In this document: piece by piece, positions 24,697-37,483 of the stretch | How the letters are laid out: the number at the start of each line of letters is the position of its first letter | How positions within the stretch are numbered: the first letter of the stretch is position 1 | Assembly (NCBI RefSeq): GCF_006345805.1 | Contig: NC_043026.1 | Span: 9,734,001-9,798,000 of the forward strand | Reading direction: 5' to 3' | Length of the DNA: 64,000 bases | DNA from: Octopus sinensis | Lineage: Eukaryota | Translations under genes and position numbers: made by a program | The notes under the pieces: generated by a model | The model's input: the letters and a program-made list of their open reading frames with translations, nothing else | Told to the model about the DNA's origin: nothing | The model's database searches: none

Positions 24697-25875
24697 CTAC
24701 TCTTTTTTCTCTCTTGTATGAATATATTTGTGTACAGAAAGATTACTGCTGACAGAGAATGATTTACTACAAAGATCACAGTGATATGGCTTCTCTCCTG
24801 TATGAGTACGTTTGTGTGTAGTTAAAGCGCTATTTTGAGAGAATGATTTGCCACAGATGTCACAGTGATATGGAGTCGTTCCTGTATGAGTAAGTCTGTG
24901 TGAAGTCAAGGTACCACTCTGAGAGAATGATTTACCACAGATATCACAATGATGTGGTCTCTCTCCTGTATGAATACGTTTGTGTGAAGACAGTTTACTC
25001 GCATCAGAAAACGATTTATTACAAACATCACAATGATAGGGTTTCTCTCCTGTATGAGTACGTTTATGTATAGTTACATCGTTACTACGAGAGAATGATT
25101 TACCACATATATCACAGTGATATGGTCTCTCTCCTGTATGAGTACGTTTGTGTATAGTTAAGGAACTACTGTTAGAGAATGGCTTACCACAGATATCACA
25201 GTGATATGGCTTCTCTCCTGTATGAATGCGTTTGTGTACAGAAAGACTACTTGTCCGAGAGAATGATTTCCCACAAACATCACAATGATGTGGCTTCTCC
25301 CCTGTATGAGAACGTTTGTGTACAATTAACTCAGTACTTTGACAGAATGATTTACCACAGATATCGCAATGATATGGTTTCTCTCCTGTATGAATACGTT
25401 TATGTGCAATAACGTGACAACTATTAGAGAATGATTTACCACAGATATCACAATGATATGGCTTCTCTCCTGTATGAATACGTTTATGTCCAGTTAAGGC
25501 ACTACTTTGAGAGAATGATTTACTACAGACATCACAGTGATATGGCCTTTCTCCTGTATGAATTCGTCTGTGGGCAGTTAAAGGACTAGTTTTTGAGAAT
25601 GATTTACCACAGATATCACAATGATACGGTTTCTCTCCTGTGTGAATATGTTTGTGAGCGGTTAAAGGACTACTCTGAGAGAATGATTTACCACAAATAT
25701 CACAATGATATGGCTTCTCTCCTGTATGAACACGTTTGTGTACAGTTAAGTCCCTATTGCGAGAGAACAATTTACCACAGGTGTCACAGTGAAATGGCTT
25801 CTCTCTAGTATGAATACTTTTGTGTTCAGTGAGGTCACTTTTTTGAGAAGGATCTTTTACAGACATCACAGTCAT
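24697..25875 (-). CDS. Z4: leaderless C2H2 ORF, 392 aa, 13 intact fingers; canonical ATG (25950) closed by TAA after 13 codons (possible pseudogene)
   Basis: TAA at 25911-25909, a small insertion in the leader and a 2-bp deletion in finger 1. All 13 downstream fingers keep C/C/H/H. Acceptor 26112-13 and donor 26211-12 are intact. Confidence 0.7.
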
Positions 25876-26999
25876 ATGACGACTTTCTTATCCCTTTTAT
25901 CATATGTCTTAATGTGAAATCAATTCTTCTACTTTCTCAGTCTTTTCCATTATTTTTCTCCTCAAATCACAATGTATTTATATTGTTCTTGTTTTCCTTC
26001 TTATAGTTCACTCTTTACAAAGAATTTGCTTTGTACATCAATTCCTATCAGTCTTAAAAGATGATAAATATTGAGGATGTATCTTCAGTTATCCCAATGT
26101 CATCTGATATTCTGAAATAATAAAGAAACATCAGTGTAAGATACAGAGGCTACTTAAAAAAACACAGATTCAAAGGTGGAAAATTTACATTTCTACAGAA
26201 ATAAACATTTACCTGAACAACTGAACTTATAATTTAACATTGTTGTTTAACCCTGAGGTGTCTCTGAGCAGAAATATGATTAAAGACTTTTCACCCTTTC
26301 TTTCTCTTTAGCATTGTATAGCTAGGATCACATCATCCAATAGTCTTCAATACTCATAAATGAAAGGTGAAATTTAAGGGAAATGTGCAGTTATTTCTAG
26401 TATGTCAGATGACCACAGAGAGCTATGAAGAAAGCTATGTTTTTGATTTATCCTACACCTCCAAAATTTTAAGCTTTTCAGAGGTAATTCCTGATGGAAA
26501 AGAGGCTCTAGAAGGTTTTATATTCATTGCTTTGTCTATAATGGTAAGGGAGGTTCTCTTTCCCCACTTCATTTTCTACAATTAGGAACCTTTCCTCATA
26601 GCACCTCCATGTGACAAGTGAGAGAAGTAGCCTTGCCCCAACCAAGGCTATGGTAAGAATGTGAGGGCATGGAAAGTGTGTGAGTATGCATGTGAAAGAG
26701 AGTAGCAAGGGCTGCAGCAGTTGGGGGTCGTGGGTAGGGTAAAGGGAATGTTGATAAGATAGGTTGTGGGAGATTTTTGACAGAGGGCAGATATAGGGAG
26801 GGTTAAGGCATGGTTGTAAAGGAGATGTTTGTATATATGGCCAATATTTTACTTAGTTTGAGTTCTCAAGTGCAACAAATCACCAGATTTCTTGGTCCTT
26901 TGTTGTCTCCTCTGTGAGGCTCAAAATCTGAAGGTCATTTCTCATCACTTTGTCCTACATTTTCCTGGGTCTTGCAAAGATTCCCTCCATAATCAGAAA

Positions 27000-27625
27000 T
27001 AGACATGGAATGTGGTGGTAAAGCACGACCTTCAAACGTTGAGCTTCACAGAGCCAATGATAAGACACCAAGACCTTTGGAGACAGGCTGTGATTGAGAA
27101 GAACCGGCAAGTAAAGGAGATCACAGCCATGGCCTATACCAGCCCATTTAAAAGTACACTTGAATCATCAGGCAATACACTGCGCTTGAGAAGACCTACC
27201 GAGTCAAGTAAAAATCAATCAAAAAATCAAATCAAAATGGAAATTGTAGTTGTGGATGAGCCAATGCCACCTGACGACATGTAACAAGTACCATTCAAGT
27301 GTGAGTTGATGCCAGTGCCGCCTGACTGGCTACTGTGCTGGTCGCACATAAAAAAAACAAAAAAACATTCGAATGTGGCTGCTGCCAGTGGCACATAAAA
27401 AGCACCAAATGTGGTTGATGCCAGTGCTGCTTGACAGGCTCCCATGCCAGTGGCACATAAAAACCACCCACTACACTCTTGGAATTGTTGGCATTAGGAA
27501 GGGCATCCAGCTATAGAAACCTTGCCACATCAGATTGGAGCCTGGTGCACCCTACTGGCTTGCTAGTCCCAAGTCAAACCATCCAATGCATATCAGCATG
27601 GAAACAGATGCTAAACGATGATGAT
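27000..27625 (+). mobile_element. RTE-LINE 3' end (ORF C-terminus plus family D UTR)
   Basis: TWNVVVKHDLQTLSFTEPMIRHQDLWRQAVIEKNR, then (AAATC)n, ~60-bp units and a (GAT)n tail. Confidence 0.7.
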
Positions 27626-28017
27626 CACAGTGAAAAGGCTTCTTTCCTGTATGAGTACATTTATCTAATTGAATGACTATTGTCAGAGAATGATGTCCCA
27701 CAGATATCACAATGATATAGTTTCTCTCCTGTATGGATACGTTTGTGTTTAGTCAAATGGCTACTTTCAGAGAATGATTTACCACAGATATCATAGTCAT
27801 ATGATTTCTCTCCTGTATGAACACACGTTTGTGTACAGTTATGTGCAGGTATCACAATGATACGACTTCACTCCTGTATGAATACGTCTGTGAGCAGTGA
27901 AACAACCATTTTGAGAATAATATTAACCACAGGTAGCAGTTACATGGCTTCTCCCTGATATGAATATGTTTATGTAAAGTCATGGCAGTACTGCGGGAGA
28001 ATCATTTACTGCAGATA
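27626..28017 (-). pseudogene. Decayed zinc-finger units downstream of the Z5 stop
   Basis: Recognisable [29 protein letters not shown] among frameshifts and stops. Confidence 0.8.
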
Positions 28018-35608: not shown

Positions 35609-36000
35609 TGTGAAGACCTGTTGAGGCAAGTGAAAATCAAAATCGTAATCTATCAACATCAGTGGAATTTGTAGCTGTGATACCAGTGCCGGTGGCACGT
35701 AAGAGAACCATCCGAACGTGGCCATAGCCAGCGCAACACTGACTGGCTTTCGTGCCGGTGGCACGTGAAAAGCACCATCTGACCGTGGCCGTTGCCAGCC
35801 TCCTCTGGCACCTGTGCCGGTGGCACGTAAAAAGCACCCACTACACTCACGGAGTGGTTGGCATTAGGAAGGGCATCCAGCCGTAGAAACACTGCCAGAT
35901 CAGACTGGGCCTGGTGCAGCCTTCTGGCTTCCCAGACCCCGGTCGAACCGTCCAACCCATGCTAGCATGGAAAGCGGACGTTAAACGATGATGATGATGT
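35609..36000 (+). mobile_element. Family D RTE 3' tail inserted into a decayed finger of Z7
   Basis: Flanks read EKPSH | insert | GKLFIVCCKLTVHKCIHTQEKR* on the minus strand. Confidence 0.8.
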
Positions 36001-36082
36001 GTGTGAGATGGCTTCTCTCTAGTACGAGTACGTTTATGAAAGGTCATAGTATTACTGTGAGAGAGTCACCTTAGATATCACA

Positions 36083-37165
36083 CTAAAATGGTTTCTCTTC
36101 AGTATGAATATTTTTATGTATATTTAAGTCACTACCAACAGAGAATGATTTACCACAGATATCACAGTGATATGGCCTTTCTCCAGTATGAAGACGTCTG
36201 TGGACAGTTAAATAACCATTTTGAGAGAATGATTTACCACAGATATCACAGCCATATGGCTTCTCTCCTGTATGAATACGTTTGTGAGCAGTTAACGTAC
36301 TACTTTGGGTGAATGATTTACCACAGATATCACACTGATATGGTTTCTCCCCTGTATGAATACGTTTGTGTGAAGAGAGAGTGCTACTGTCAGAGAATGA
36401 TTTACCACAAATATCACAATGATGTGGCTTGTCTCCTGTATGAATACGCTTGTGTACAATTAAAGCACTACCATCAGACAATGATTTACCACAGATATCA
36501 CAATGAAATGGTTTCTCTCCCGTGTGAATACGTCTGTGTTTTTTTAACTCACTATTTTGGGAGACTGCTTTACCACAGATATCACAGTGATATGCTTCCT
36601 CTCCAGTATGAAGACGTTTGTGTACAGTCAAAGCAGAACTGACAGTGAATGATTTACCACAGATATCACAGTGGTACGGTTTCTCTCCTGTATGAATACG
36701 TCTGTGGGCAGATAATGTACCATTCTCACTGAATGATTTACCACAGATATCACAATGATATGGTTTCTCTCCTGTATGAATACGTCTGTGGGCAGTTATA
36801 TGACCACTTTGAGAGAATGATTTACCACAGATATCACAATGATACAATCTCTCTCCTGTATGAATATATTTGTGTCTAGTTAAGTGACAACTGCGATAGA
36901 ATGATTTACCACAGACATCACAAGGATATAGCTTTCCTTTTGTATGAATATATTTGTGTACAGTTAGATTACGCTTCTGAGAAAATGATTTGCCACAGAC
37001 ATCACAGTAATACAACTTCTCTCCTGTATGAATAAGTTTGTGTTCAGTTAGGTTACTTTTTCGAGAGAAGGATCTTTTACAGACATCACAGTCATATGAC
37101 AACTTTCTTATCCCTTTTATGTTTTCATGGGAAATCAATTCTTCAACCTTTTTGCTCTTTTCCAT
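36083..37165 (-). CDS. Z7: C2H2 zinc-finger protein, 360 aa, 12 fingers
   Basis: ATG at 37165; stop TAG at the start of a 13th finger; intron 37326-37426. Confidence 0.92.
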
Positions 37166-37483
37166 TATTTTCCTCCTCAAATCACAATGTATTTATATTG
37201 TTCTTGTTTTCCTTCTTATAGTTCACTCTTTACAAAGAATTTGCTTTGTACATCAATTCCTATCAGTCTTAAAAGATGATAAATATTGAGGATGTATCTT
37301 CTCTTATCCAATGTCATCTGATATTCTGAAATAAGAAAGAAAGATCAGTGTAAAATATGGAGGCTACTTAAAAAAACACAGATTCAAATGAGGAAAATTT
37401 ACATTTCCACAGAAATAAAAATTTACCTGAACAACTGAAATTATAATTTGACATTGTTGTTTAACCCTGAGGCATCTCTAACT

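Follow-up and report, generated by a model that had tools for sequence, protein, structure and literature searches.

Zinc-finger cassettes without a putative promoter module behind neighbours that carry it in a tandem C2H2 cluster of Octopus sinensis

The cassettes and their predicted gene unit

A stretch of 64,000 nucleotides (nt) of the Octopus sinensis genome (assembly GCF_006345805.1, contig NC_043026.1, positions 9,734,001 to 9,798,000 of the forward strand), referred to here as the window, contains nine multi-finger C2H2 zinc-finger cassettes and one stub, named Z1 to Z10 (Table 1). Three of these, Z4, Z6 and the stub Z10, lie behind the neighbouring cassettes Z5, Z7 and Z9, respectively, and lack the putative promoter module that those neighbours possess; how they came to do so, and whether they are used, is the subject of this analysis. 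The cassettes carry 8–18 fingers with TGEKP-type linkers in one open frame. Their only Pfam domains are zf-C2H2 and zf-H2C2_2, and no KRAB, SCAN or BTB domain is found in them. An acceptor and an untranslated region (UTR) are common to the cassettes, a distal module is shared by six and a 3' flank by several, as in tandem paralogs. Membership in a tandem, effector-less C2H2 family with a common leader-exon architecture is firmly established.

From the sequence we infer a gene unit that opens with a TATA-less promoter bearing an NRF1-like CGCATGCG motif. Two non-coding exons would follow, exon 1 and an exon 2 that is 51 nt long and optional, and then a single large coding exon in which about 160 nt of UTR precede the full coding sequence. 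The predicted acceptor of the coding exon, TTATTTCAG/AATATC (the slash marks the splice boundary), occurs exactly 10 times in the window, once per cassette (0.02 expected by chance). It lies about 160 nt upstream of each start codon, and in front of it stand a CTGAT branch-like site and a pyrimidine tract. The putative exon-2 donor, GTTCAG/GTAAAT, is present in Z1–Z4 and Z7–Z10 and was not found in Z5 and Z6; its distance from the acceptor is 101 nt in Z1–Z4 and Z7, 113–116 nt in Z8 and Z9, and 53 nt in Z10. Indels among the paralogs (a 13-nt insertion in Z8 and Z9, a 48-nt deletion in Z10) lie within this GT...AG interval, whereas the 50 nt that follow it are free of them. Because the indels are confined to its interior, the interval is intron-like.

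The distal module, 600 nt long, is located 0.8–2.7 kilobases (kb) upstream of Z2, Z3, Z5, Z7, Z8 and Z9, always in gene orientation. It carries the palindrome CGCATGCG, of which the window holds exactly six copies (0.09 expected), all in distal modules, together with a TTCCGC box and, about 150 nt past the palindrome, a candidate donor CC/GTRAGTAT, with R being G in Z2 and Z3 (GTGAGT) and A in Z5, Z7, Z8 and Z9 (GTAAGT). An nhmmer profile of the six modules re-detects them at E values of 1e-112 to 1e-156 and finds none between Z5 and Z4, between Z7 and Z6 or between Z9 and Z10. A preliminary description of the window had reported this absence, and every splice coordinate that it listed falls on an identified signal: exon-1 donors at 38185 (Z7), 30688 (Z5) and 50500 (Z9), exon-2 donors at 37426 (Z7) and 50961 (Z9), and acceptor AGs at 35082 (Z6), 26112 (Z4) and 56979 (Z10). 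The remaining signals of the pairs Z5–Z4 and Z7–Z6 are the exon-2 donor of Z4 at 26212 and the acceptors of Z5 and Z7 at 29265 and 37326.

Two further features of the unit are conserved. An upstream ATG stands 8 nt into the coding exon (AATATCAG-ATG-ACATTGG) and is kept in all ten cassettes, the dead stub included (26103–26101 in Z4, 37317–37315 in Z7, 56988–56990 in Z10); the short frame that it opens measures from 4 to more than 30 codons. The first 350–500 nt of intron 1 (37824–38184, 30345–30687, 14454–14809 and 50501–50855) are as conserved as the promoter itself and hold a TGACGTGTCGA box and a unit of about 50 nt, GAGATGTCTATGATTTGTGCGAGATTTAGCTGCTATTTCT, of which Z5 and Z7 have one copy and Z2, Z3, Z8 and Z9 have two. 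This segment is possibly a downstream regulatory element or an alternative exon.

Junctions and lesions of Z4, Z6 and Z10

Z6 retains its acceptor, branch region, UTR and ATG, as the preliminary description had stated. Its homology to the other cassettes ends at −210 from the ATG (35132), about 50 nt upstream of the acceptor, where it abuts the 3' flank of Z7. The 3' flanks of Z1, Z2, Z3, Z4, Z7 and Z8 are homologous, and those of Z4, Z7 and Z8 share an ATTAAA about 330 nt past the stop. In Z1, Z2, Z4 and Z8 the flank continues through TACAAAACAGAAGAGACCACAAAGGGAAAACATGGGG; that of Z7 stops at GAGACC and is followed by the T-run of Z6 intron 2, itself cut within a sequence that is continuous in eight cassettes. 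Because the junction truncates two sequences that are continuous elsewhere, it points to a single deletion running from the Z7 flank into Z6 intron 2. The 3' flank of Z6 (33407–33922) has no homology to any other cassette flank in the window, and the missing remainder of the Z7 flank was not found beyond Z6. Three other origins were considered and set aside. The unrelated 3' flanks of Z6 and Z7 rule out that −210 to +430 was duplicated in tandem; insertion of a Z6 fragment into the Z7 flank is not supported, as that flank was not seen to resume past Z6; and for duplication of a two-gene block (Z8–Z7 copied as Z6–Z5), the shared intergenic pieces proved to be transposon copies and not colinear. 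The sole coding lesion of Z6 is a 2-nt deletion after finger 8. In Z7 the acceptor tract upstream of exon 2 is replaced by a 222-nt repeat in two copies (37477–37916).

Z4 keeps both its acceptor and the exon upstream of it, again as described before, with exon 2 and intron 2 retained and homology ending at −497 (26444). Upstream of this limit lie apparent debris of a long interspersed nuclear element (LINE), an element resembling a short interspersed nuclear element (SINE) and then the decayed distal fingers of Z5. The 1.2-kb spacer contains neither the family 3' flank nor the distal module, nor AATAAA or ATTAAA. The origin of this junction is less clean than that of Z7 and Z6, as Z5 wholly lacks the family flank and the spacer is transposon material. 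In Z4, a stretch of about 65 nt holds three lesions: codon 14 has changed from GAA to TAA, 5 nt have been inserted and 2 nt have been deleted. The insertion and the deletion jointly restore the frame at the cost of finger 1; the next 13 fingers are intact. The long frame now begins at the third ATG, and the strong canonical ATG upstream heads a frame of 13 codons. Because the long frame starts in weak context behind this strong ATG, its efficient translation is unlikely. On the sense strand no AATAAA or ATTAAA occurs from the Z5 stop to the Z4 acceptor (26112–28018), so that the first canonical polyadenylation (poly(A)) signal past Z5 is the ATTAAA of Z4 at 24162; an interval free of hexamers is expected in about 19% of Markov-chain randomisations (P about 0.19) and is unremarkable by itself. 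The Z5 transcript may end at the Z4 site or use a variant hexamer.

The third case is only partly what had been proposed. Z10 does keep its acceptor behind Z9 and does lack the distal module, but it is not a whole-coding-sequence cassette: about 130 nt of N-terminus and first finger remain (57561–57692), with the ATG now GTG and several stops, and no finger array follows this remnant. The proposed arrangement of a promoter followed by two equivalent cassettes therefore describes the anatomy of Z4–Z7 correctly, but not that of Z9 and Z10. As in duplicated pseudogenes, the distal module and exon 1 are missing from all three copies (exon 2 also from Z6), and all three carry frame-disrupting lesions.

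Damage in all three had been noted from the outset, and rightly, but it is not specific to the promoterless copies, as the promoter-bearing Z3, Z5 and Z7 are truncated too. The frame of Z3 is broken by two in-frame stops, some five decayed fingers lie beyond the early end of Z5, and the premature end of Z7 is followed by one decayed finger and a SINE-like insertion. Among the nine cassettes of known promoter status, lesions are found in 3/3 promoterless and 3/6 promoter-bearing ones, an association that is not significant (hypergeometric P about 0.24, calculated by hand).

In other respects Z4 and Z6 are preserved like their neighbours. Scored against the family consensus at the 14 most conserved positions, finger integrity reaches 0.944 in Z4 and 0.912 in Z6, compared with 0.915–0.963 in the others. 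Private changes over 377 nt (−212 to +165), counted as alignment columns, number 15 in Z4 (7 of them from two indels), 11 in Z6, 12 in Z5 and 11 in Z7. Long neutral drift of Z4 and Z6 is not indicated, and copies that were dead on arrival are therefore disfavoured. The 5' regions (intron 2, UTR and N-terminus) are 87–97% identical among cassettes, the 3' flanks only 52–72%, and the exon, intron 2 and the region from −497 to −320 are about equally conserved. This suggests concerted evolution, in which the 5' ends are homogenised by gene conversion or unequal exchange. A conserved acceptor and UTR are no evidence of function, because exon and intron are about equally conserved at the 5' end and the dead Z10 retains its acceptor. 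The fingers of Z4–Z9 have no positional orthology, their best matches being scattered at 75–90% identity without colinearity. A finger-by-finger ratio of non-synonymous to synonymous substitution rates was abandoned, as such matches preclude reliable computation.

Table 1. Coordinates of the cassettes and associated features in the window (aa, amino acids)
Feature	Position	Strand	Details
Z1 cassette	702-1877	+	
Z2 cassette	12144-13313	-	
Z3 cassette	16372-18201	-	
Z4 3' flank, family type	23861-24696	-	SINE-like insertion 24330-24582; ATTAAA 24162-24157
Z4 cassette	24697-25950	-	
Z4 residual frame	24697-25875	-	392 aa from internal ATG; 13 intact fingers
Z4 damaged N-terminus	25838-25950	-	canonical ATG 25950-25948; TAA at codon 14 (25911-25909)
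Z4 N-terminal indels	~25905-25901; ~25848-25846	-	5-nt insertion; 2-nt deletion
Z4 intron 2	26112-26212	-	101 nt; AG at 26112
Z4 putative non-coding exon 2	26213-26263	-	acceptor TTTCTGCTCAG/; donor GT at 26212
Z4 retained proximal upstream region	26264-26444	-	to -497; 91% identical to Z1
Z5-Z4 spacer	26445-27625	-	SINE-like element 27388-27625; LINE-like debris (own interpretation)
Z5 cassette	27624-29103	-	
Z5 decayed distal fingers	27624-28017	-	frameshifts and stops
Z5 coding sequence	28018-29103	-	361 aa, 12 fingers
Z5 retained intron stub and acceptor	29265-29340	-	AG at 29265; homology ends at -237 beside T-run of inserted element; no exon 2
Z5 distal module	30345-30949	-	palindrome 30828-30835; donor G at 30688
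Z6 AATAAA	33626-33631	-	~300 nt past natural Z6 stop
Z6 cassette	33923-34922	-	
Z6 three further fingers	33923-34172	-	intact, out of frame; family-type end GEKRKE, stop 33925-33923
Z6 open frame, canonical ATG	34173-34922	-	249 aa, 8 fingers; ended by 2-nt deletion ~34174
Z6 5' UTR in coding exon	34923-35081	-	private 2-nt deletion beside conserved upstream ATG
Z6 retained intron stub	35082-35132	-	~50 nt; branch region, pyrimidine tract, AG at 35082
Z7/Z6 junction	35123-35142	-	GAGACC-TCGA-TTTTTTTAAG; truncated flank element and truncated intron 2
Z7 3' flank	35137-35545	-	homologous to Z1, Z2, Z3, Z4, Z8 flanks; conserved ATTAAA 35241-35236
Z7 decayed distal fingers	35546-36082	-	interrupted by SINE-like element 35686-36001
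Z7 cassette, coding sequence	36083-37165	-	360 aa, 12 fingers; premature stop relative to ancestral array
Z7 intron 2	37326-37426	-	101 nt; branch-like CTGAT, pyrimidine tract, AG at 37326
Z7 putative non-coding exon 2	37427-37477	-	donor GT at 37426
Z7 distal module	37824-38449	-	palindrome 38335-38342, TTCCGC box, putative non-coding exon 1, donor G 38185, conserved intron 1 start
Z8 cassette	42833-44164	-	
Z9 distal module	50250-50855	+	palindrome 50346-50353; donor G at 50500
Z9 cassette	51332-52660	+	
Z10 stub	near 56921-57725	+	exon-2 donor 56927, 53-nt intron, AG 56979, UTR with insertions, N-terminal remnant

Origin and possible use of the promoterless copies

The most probable account, held with moderate confidence, is that Z4, Z6 and Z10 are once-complete paralogs that lost their 5' module by deletion and are now in early decay. 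In Z6, a single deletion would have joined the middle of the Z7 3' flank to the middle of the last Z6 intron, so that Z6 lost its promoter together with exons 1 and 2. For Z4, all sequence beyond −497 would have been lost or replaced by transposon debris, along with the Z5 3' flank. The copies left without a promoter would then have begun to decay, forming a series from Z6, with one 2-nt frameshift, through Z4, with a nonsense change and two compensating indels, to Z10, whose start and array are gone. The lesions of Z4 and Z6 are few and look recent, with the three Z6 fingers after the frameshift and 13 fingers of Z4 intact, and Z10 shows the end state of such decay. If the deletions were recent, one lesion in Z6, three in Z4 and a stub in Z10 would make an ordinary decay series. 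Read-through transcripts may splice from the exon 1 of a neighbour onto the intact acceptors, which lie 1–2 kb downstream on the same strand; such splicing is regarded as a by-product, not as a regulated choice.

Several points weigh against this account. If the deletions were old, Z4 and Z6 could have stayed so well preserved only by being expressed without an own promoter, most simply through the leader exon of the neighbour. All three Z4 lesions fall in about 110 nt of a frame of about 1290 nt, which has a probability of about 6e-4 if lesions are uniform and independent. This clustering and the frame-restoring indels are hints that selection on the array continued beyond the first hits. Lesions are also no clean mark of dead genes here, because the promoter-bearing Z3, Z5 and Z7 are truncated as well, and the 2-nt deletion of Z6, found within TGTG, may be an error of the assembly. 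Finally, Z5 and Z4 may share one transcription unit, given that neither a family flank nor a canonical hexamer lies between them.

An unlikely alternative that survives best among the rivals is that Z4, and possibly Z6, are transcribed from start sites of their own in a proximal promoter and are thus not promoterless. Such sites could lie in the conserved 230 nt upstream of exon 2 (in Z4 and Z1–Z3) or in the invariant block just before the acceptor. The region of Z4 from −497 to −320 is 91% identical to that of Z1, and an E-box-like palindrome GGTCACATGACC occurs in Z1–Z3 (CATCTG in Z4); moreover, the 50 nt before the acceptor are near-invariant in all cassettes, beyond what a branch point alone would need. 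However, the GT...AG pair and its 101-nt spacer are kept in eight cassettes with indels tolerated only inside, which is how an intron behaves. The proximal region also lacks the palindrome and the TTCCGC boxes of the six distal modules, and Z5 and Z7 have no −497 to −320 region, yet possess good frames.

The preliminary description had raised a regulated choice of alternative terminal exons, in which one promoter and its non-coding leader would be spliced to either of two finger arrays. The leader of Z7 would be joined to the Z7 exon or, skipping that exon and its poly(A) site, to the Z6 exon, and the leader of Z5 likewise to Z5 or Z4. The anatomy is compatible with this arrangement, which is possible but unsupported and must be considered improbable. 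Consensus donors stand upstream (38185, 37426 and 30688), and both members of each pair carry identical acceptors and branch points on the same strand (37326 and 35082; 29265 and 26112). Z6 and Z4 have poly(A) hexamers of their own (AATAAA at 33631, ATTAAA at 24162), Z7 has ATTAAA at 35241 and Z5 none before Z4, although hexamers alone do not establish use. Z5 keeps an intact frame with only about 75 nt of intron and without exon 2, the arrays and 5' regions of Z4 and Z6 are as well preserved as those of their neighbours, and the Z6 lesion is of a kind tolerated in Z3, Z5 and Z7. No canonical poly(A) hexamer separates Z5 from Z4, and long 3' UTRs have been reported for octopus mRNAs (PMC9699675).

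Against a regulated choice stands, first, the pattern itself: a promoterless copy behind a promoter-bearing one carries no weight alone, because this configuration follows automatically from any promoter loss in a head-to-tail array. The exons concerned are, moreover, not intact. Z4 has a stop at codon 14 of its canonical frame and has lost finger 1, and two upstream ATGs precede its long frame, which starts in weak context; Z6 shifts out of frame past finger 8, and Z10 is a mere stub without an array. Z7 retains its conserved ATTAAA about 155 nt before the Z6 acceptor, and the high 5' similarity, being equal over intron and exon, can be put down to gene conversion from neighbours; it is no sign of selection on Z4 or Z6. 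RNA pairing between the donor and acceptor sides, of the docking and selector type known from Dscam, was not detected beyond shuffled controls (duplex energies at z +0.3 to −1.9). A related possibility, also improbable, is a nascent locus of the kind represented by Drosophila lola, in which deletion placed a whole finger exon behind a neighbour, so that one leader serves two arrays and selection keeps the downstream arrays open. Here the Z6 frameshift would be a tolerated truncation, as in Z3, Z5 and Z7, or an assembly error.

The most doubtful reading is that Z4, Z6 and Z10 are partial duplicates copied without a promoter and never functional: all three do lack the module and carry lesions, and a very young partial copy of a paralog outside the window could resemble Z6, but the Z6 3' flank is not homologous to that of Z7, Z6 fingers match no window cassette by position, the absence of the rest of the Z7 flank beyond Z6 speaks against insertion there, only 1–3 lesions occur on frames of 1.0–1.3 kb, the 5' regions differ by 9–12% from every other cassette, and in Z4 and Z6 the fingers are as intact as is typical of the family and private 5' changes are not in excess.

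Family context and comparison with known systems

An exact look-up of nine proteins of the window found none in a collection of 15 billion proteins and none on any contig. A homology search with Z6 returned a list dominated by generic zinc-finger proteins, in which the best cephalopod matches, from Octopus vulgaris, reached 62–63% identity and were rejected as orthologues on that account. A database search with a profile of eight cassette N-termini matched only short, unrelated finger fragments. An Octopus vulgaris locus was also rejected as a guide to gene structure or dating, having only about 130 nt around the start codon in common with the window. The papers examined on cephalopod C2H2 expansions do not cover exon structure or shared promoters.

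Other features of the window concern its repeats and the remaining cassettes. A SINE-like element lies behind almost every cassette, and a tandem array at 54401–55323 (+ strand) is built of about 7 copies, 96–97% alike, of a 134-nt unit that corresponds to the 3' part of this element. Segments at 5907–6572, 15092–15283 and 22137–22318 (all + strand) were interpreted from sequence as retrotransposon remains, comprising one open frame that resembles a reverse transcriptase C-terminus and a zinc-knuckle-like segment (CNVCVRPC...H / CRACGRE...H) in two copies. A tRNA-Phe (GAA) gene at 47676–47748 (+ strand), the sole Rfam match in the window, lies between the head-to-head promoters of Z8 and Z9, and a TG/CA-rich low-complexity stretch at 49058–49726 produces long spurious open frames on both strands (MYVCMYACMY...). 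Z2 and Z3 form a recent pair whose upstream sequences are 98% identical. Within Z3 (16372–17220, − strand), an identical lesion, CDISGKSFS followed by a stop (a one-codon deletion and a stop), occurs twice, which implies that a finger block was duplicated within the array after the lesion arose.

The locus yields a usable sequence-based gene model for a zinc-finger family, in which a predicted promoter motif is followed by two leader exons and a single coding exon. If the ordinary reading of promoter loss and decay is true, it also offers a clean, datable snapshot of dying members in a fast-growing zinc-finger family, in the order of promoter deletion, first frame lesions and array loss. If Z6 and Z4 are instead used in a regulated manner from the upstream promoters, the locus would document the beginnings of a system of alternative DNA-binding exons, which would bear on how transcription-factor repertoires diversify in cephalopod nervous systems.

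In mechanism, the alternative-exon idea would be closest to lola and mod(mdg4) of Drosophila, and it is also close to read-through transcripts of neighbouring genes. Loci of the lola type probably expand by promoterless tandem copying of a 3' exon. In lola and mod(mdg4), a common 5' unit, whose shared exons encode the BTB domain, is joined to 20–30 intact, RNA-proven alternative 3' exons that encode different zinc-finger modules, and in mod(mdg4) trans-splicing is aided by intron motifs (PMC1947980, PMC13490949). The likeness, which here is one of sequence only, lies in a single 5' unit upstream of alternative finger-encoding 3' exons. In contrast, the shared part in the octopus locus would be non-coding, each unit would have two cassettes of which the downstream one is damaged, and no pairing motif was found.

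In clustered protocadherins, every variable exon is a first exon that has a promoter of its own and is joined to shared constant exons. The two systems have in common a tandem array of large similar exons, a choice of one exon per transcript (predicted for the octopus locus) and, for protocadherins too, a family expanded in cephalopods. Z4, Z6 and Z10, however, have no distal module, the coding exons here are predicted to come last and to include the stop codon, and no coding exon is shared; by its predicted structure, the locus is not protocadherin-like.

Read-through within human zinc-finger clusters is exemplified by ZNF559-ZNF177 and ZNF816-ZNF321P. The octopus pairs resemble such cases in being same-strand neighbours 1–2 kb apart, with an upstream donor and an intact downstream acceptor. 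Known read-through (conjoined) transcripts of adjacent genes (reviewed in PMC6862657) are based on RNA, whereas Z7/Z6 and Z5/Z4 are candidates by their sequence. In a long-read annotation of Octopus vulgaris, fusion transcripts were deliberately removed, so that read-through events would be invisible in an annotation of that type (PMC9699675).

Tandem C2H2 clusters are characterised by lineage-specific expansion, by loss of genes and gene parts, and by truncation of arrays through stop codons (PMC2443715). The octopus cluster shares the tandem expansion, the loss of parts and the truncation of arrays by stops. It differs in its effector-less design of a single coding exon with two predicted non-coding leaders, and in the very early stage at which the decay of Z4 and Z6 appears to have been caught.

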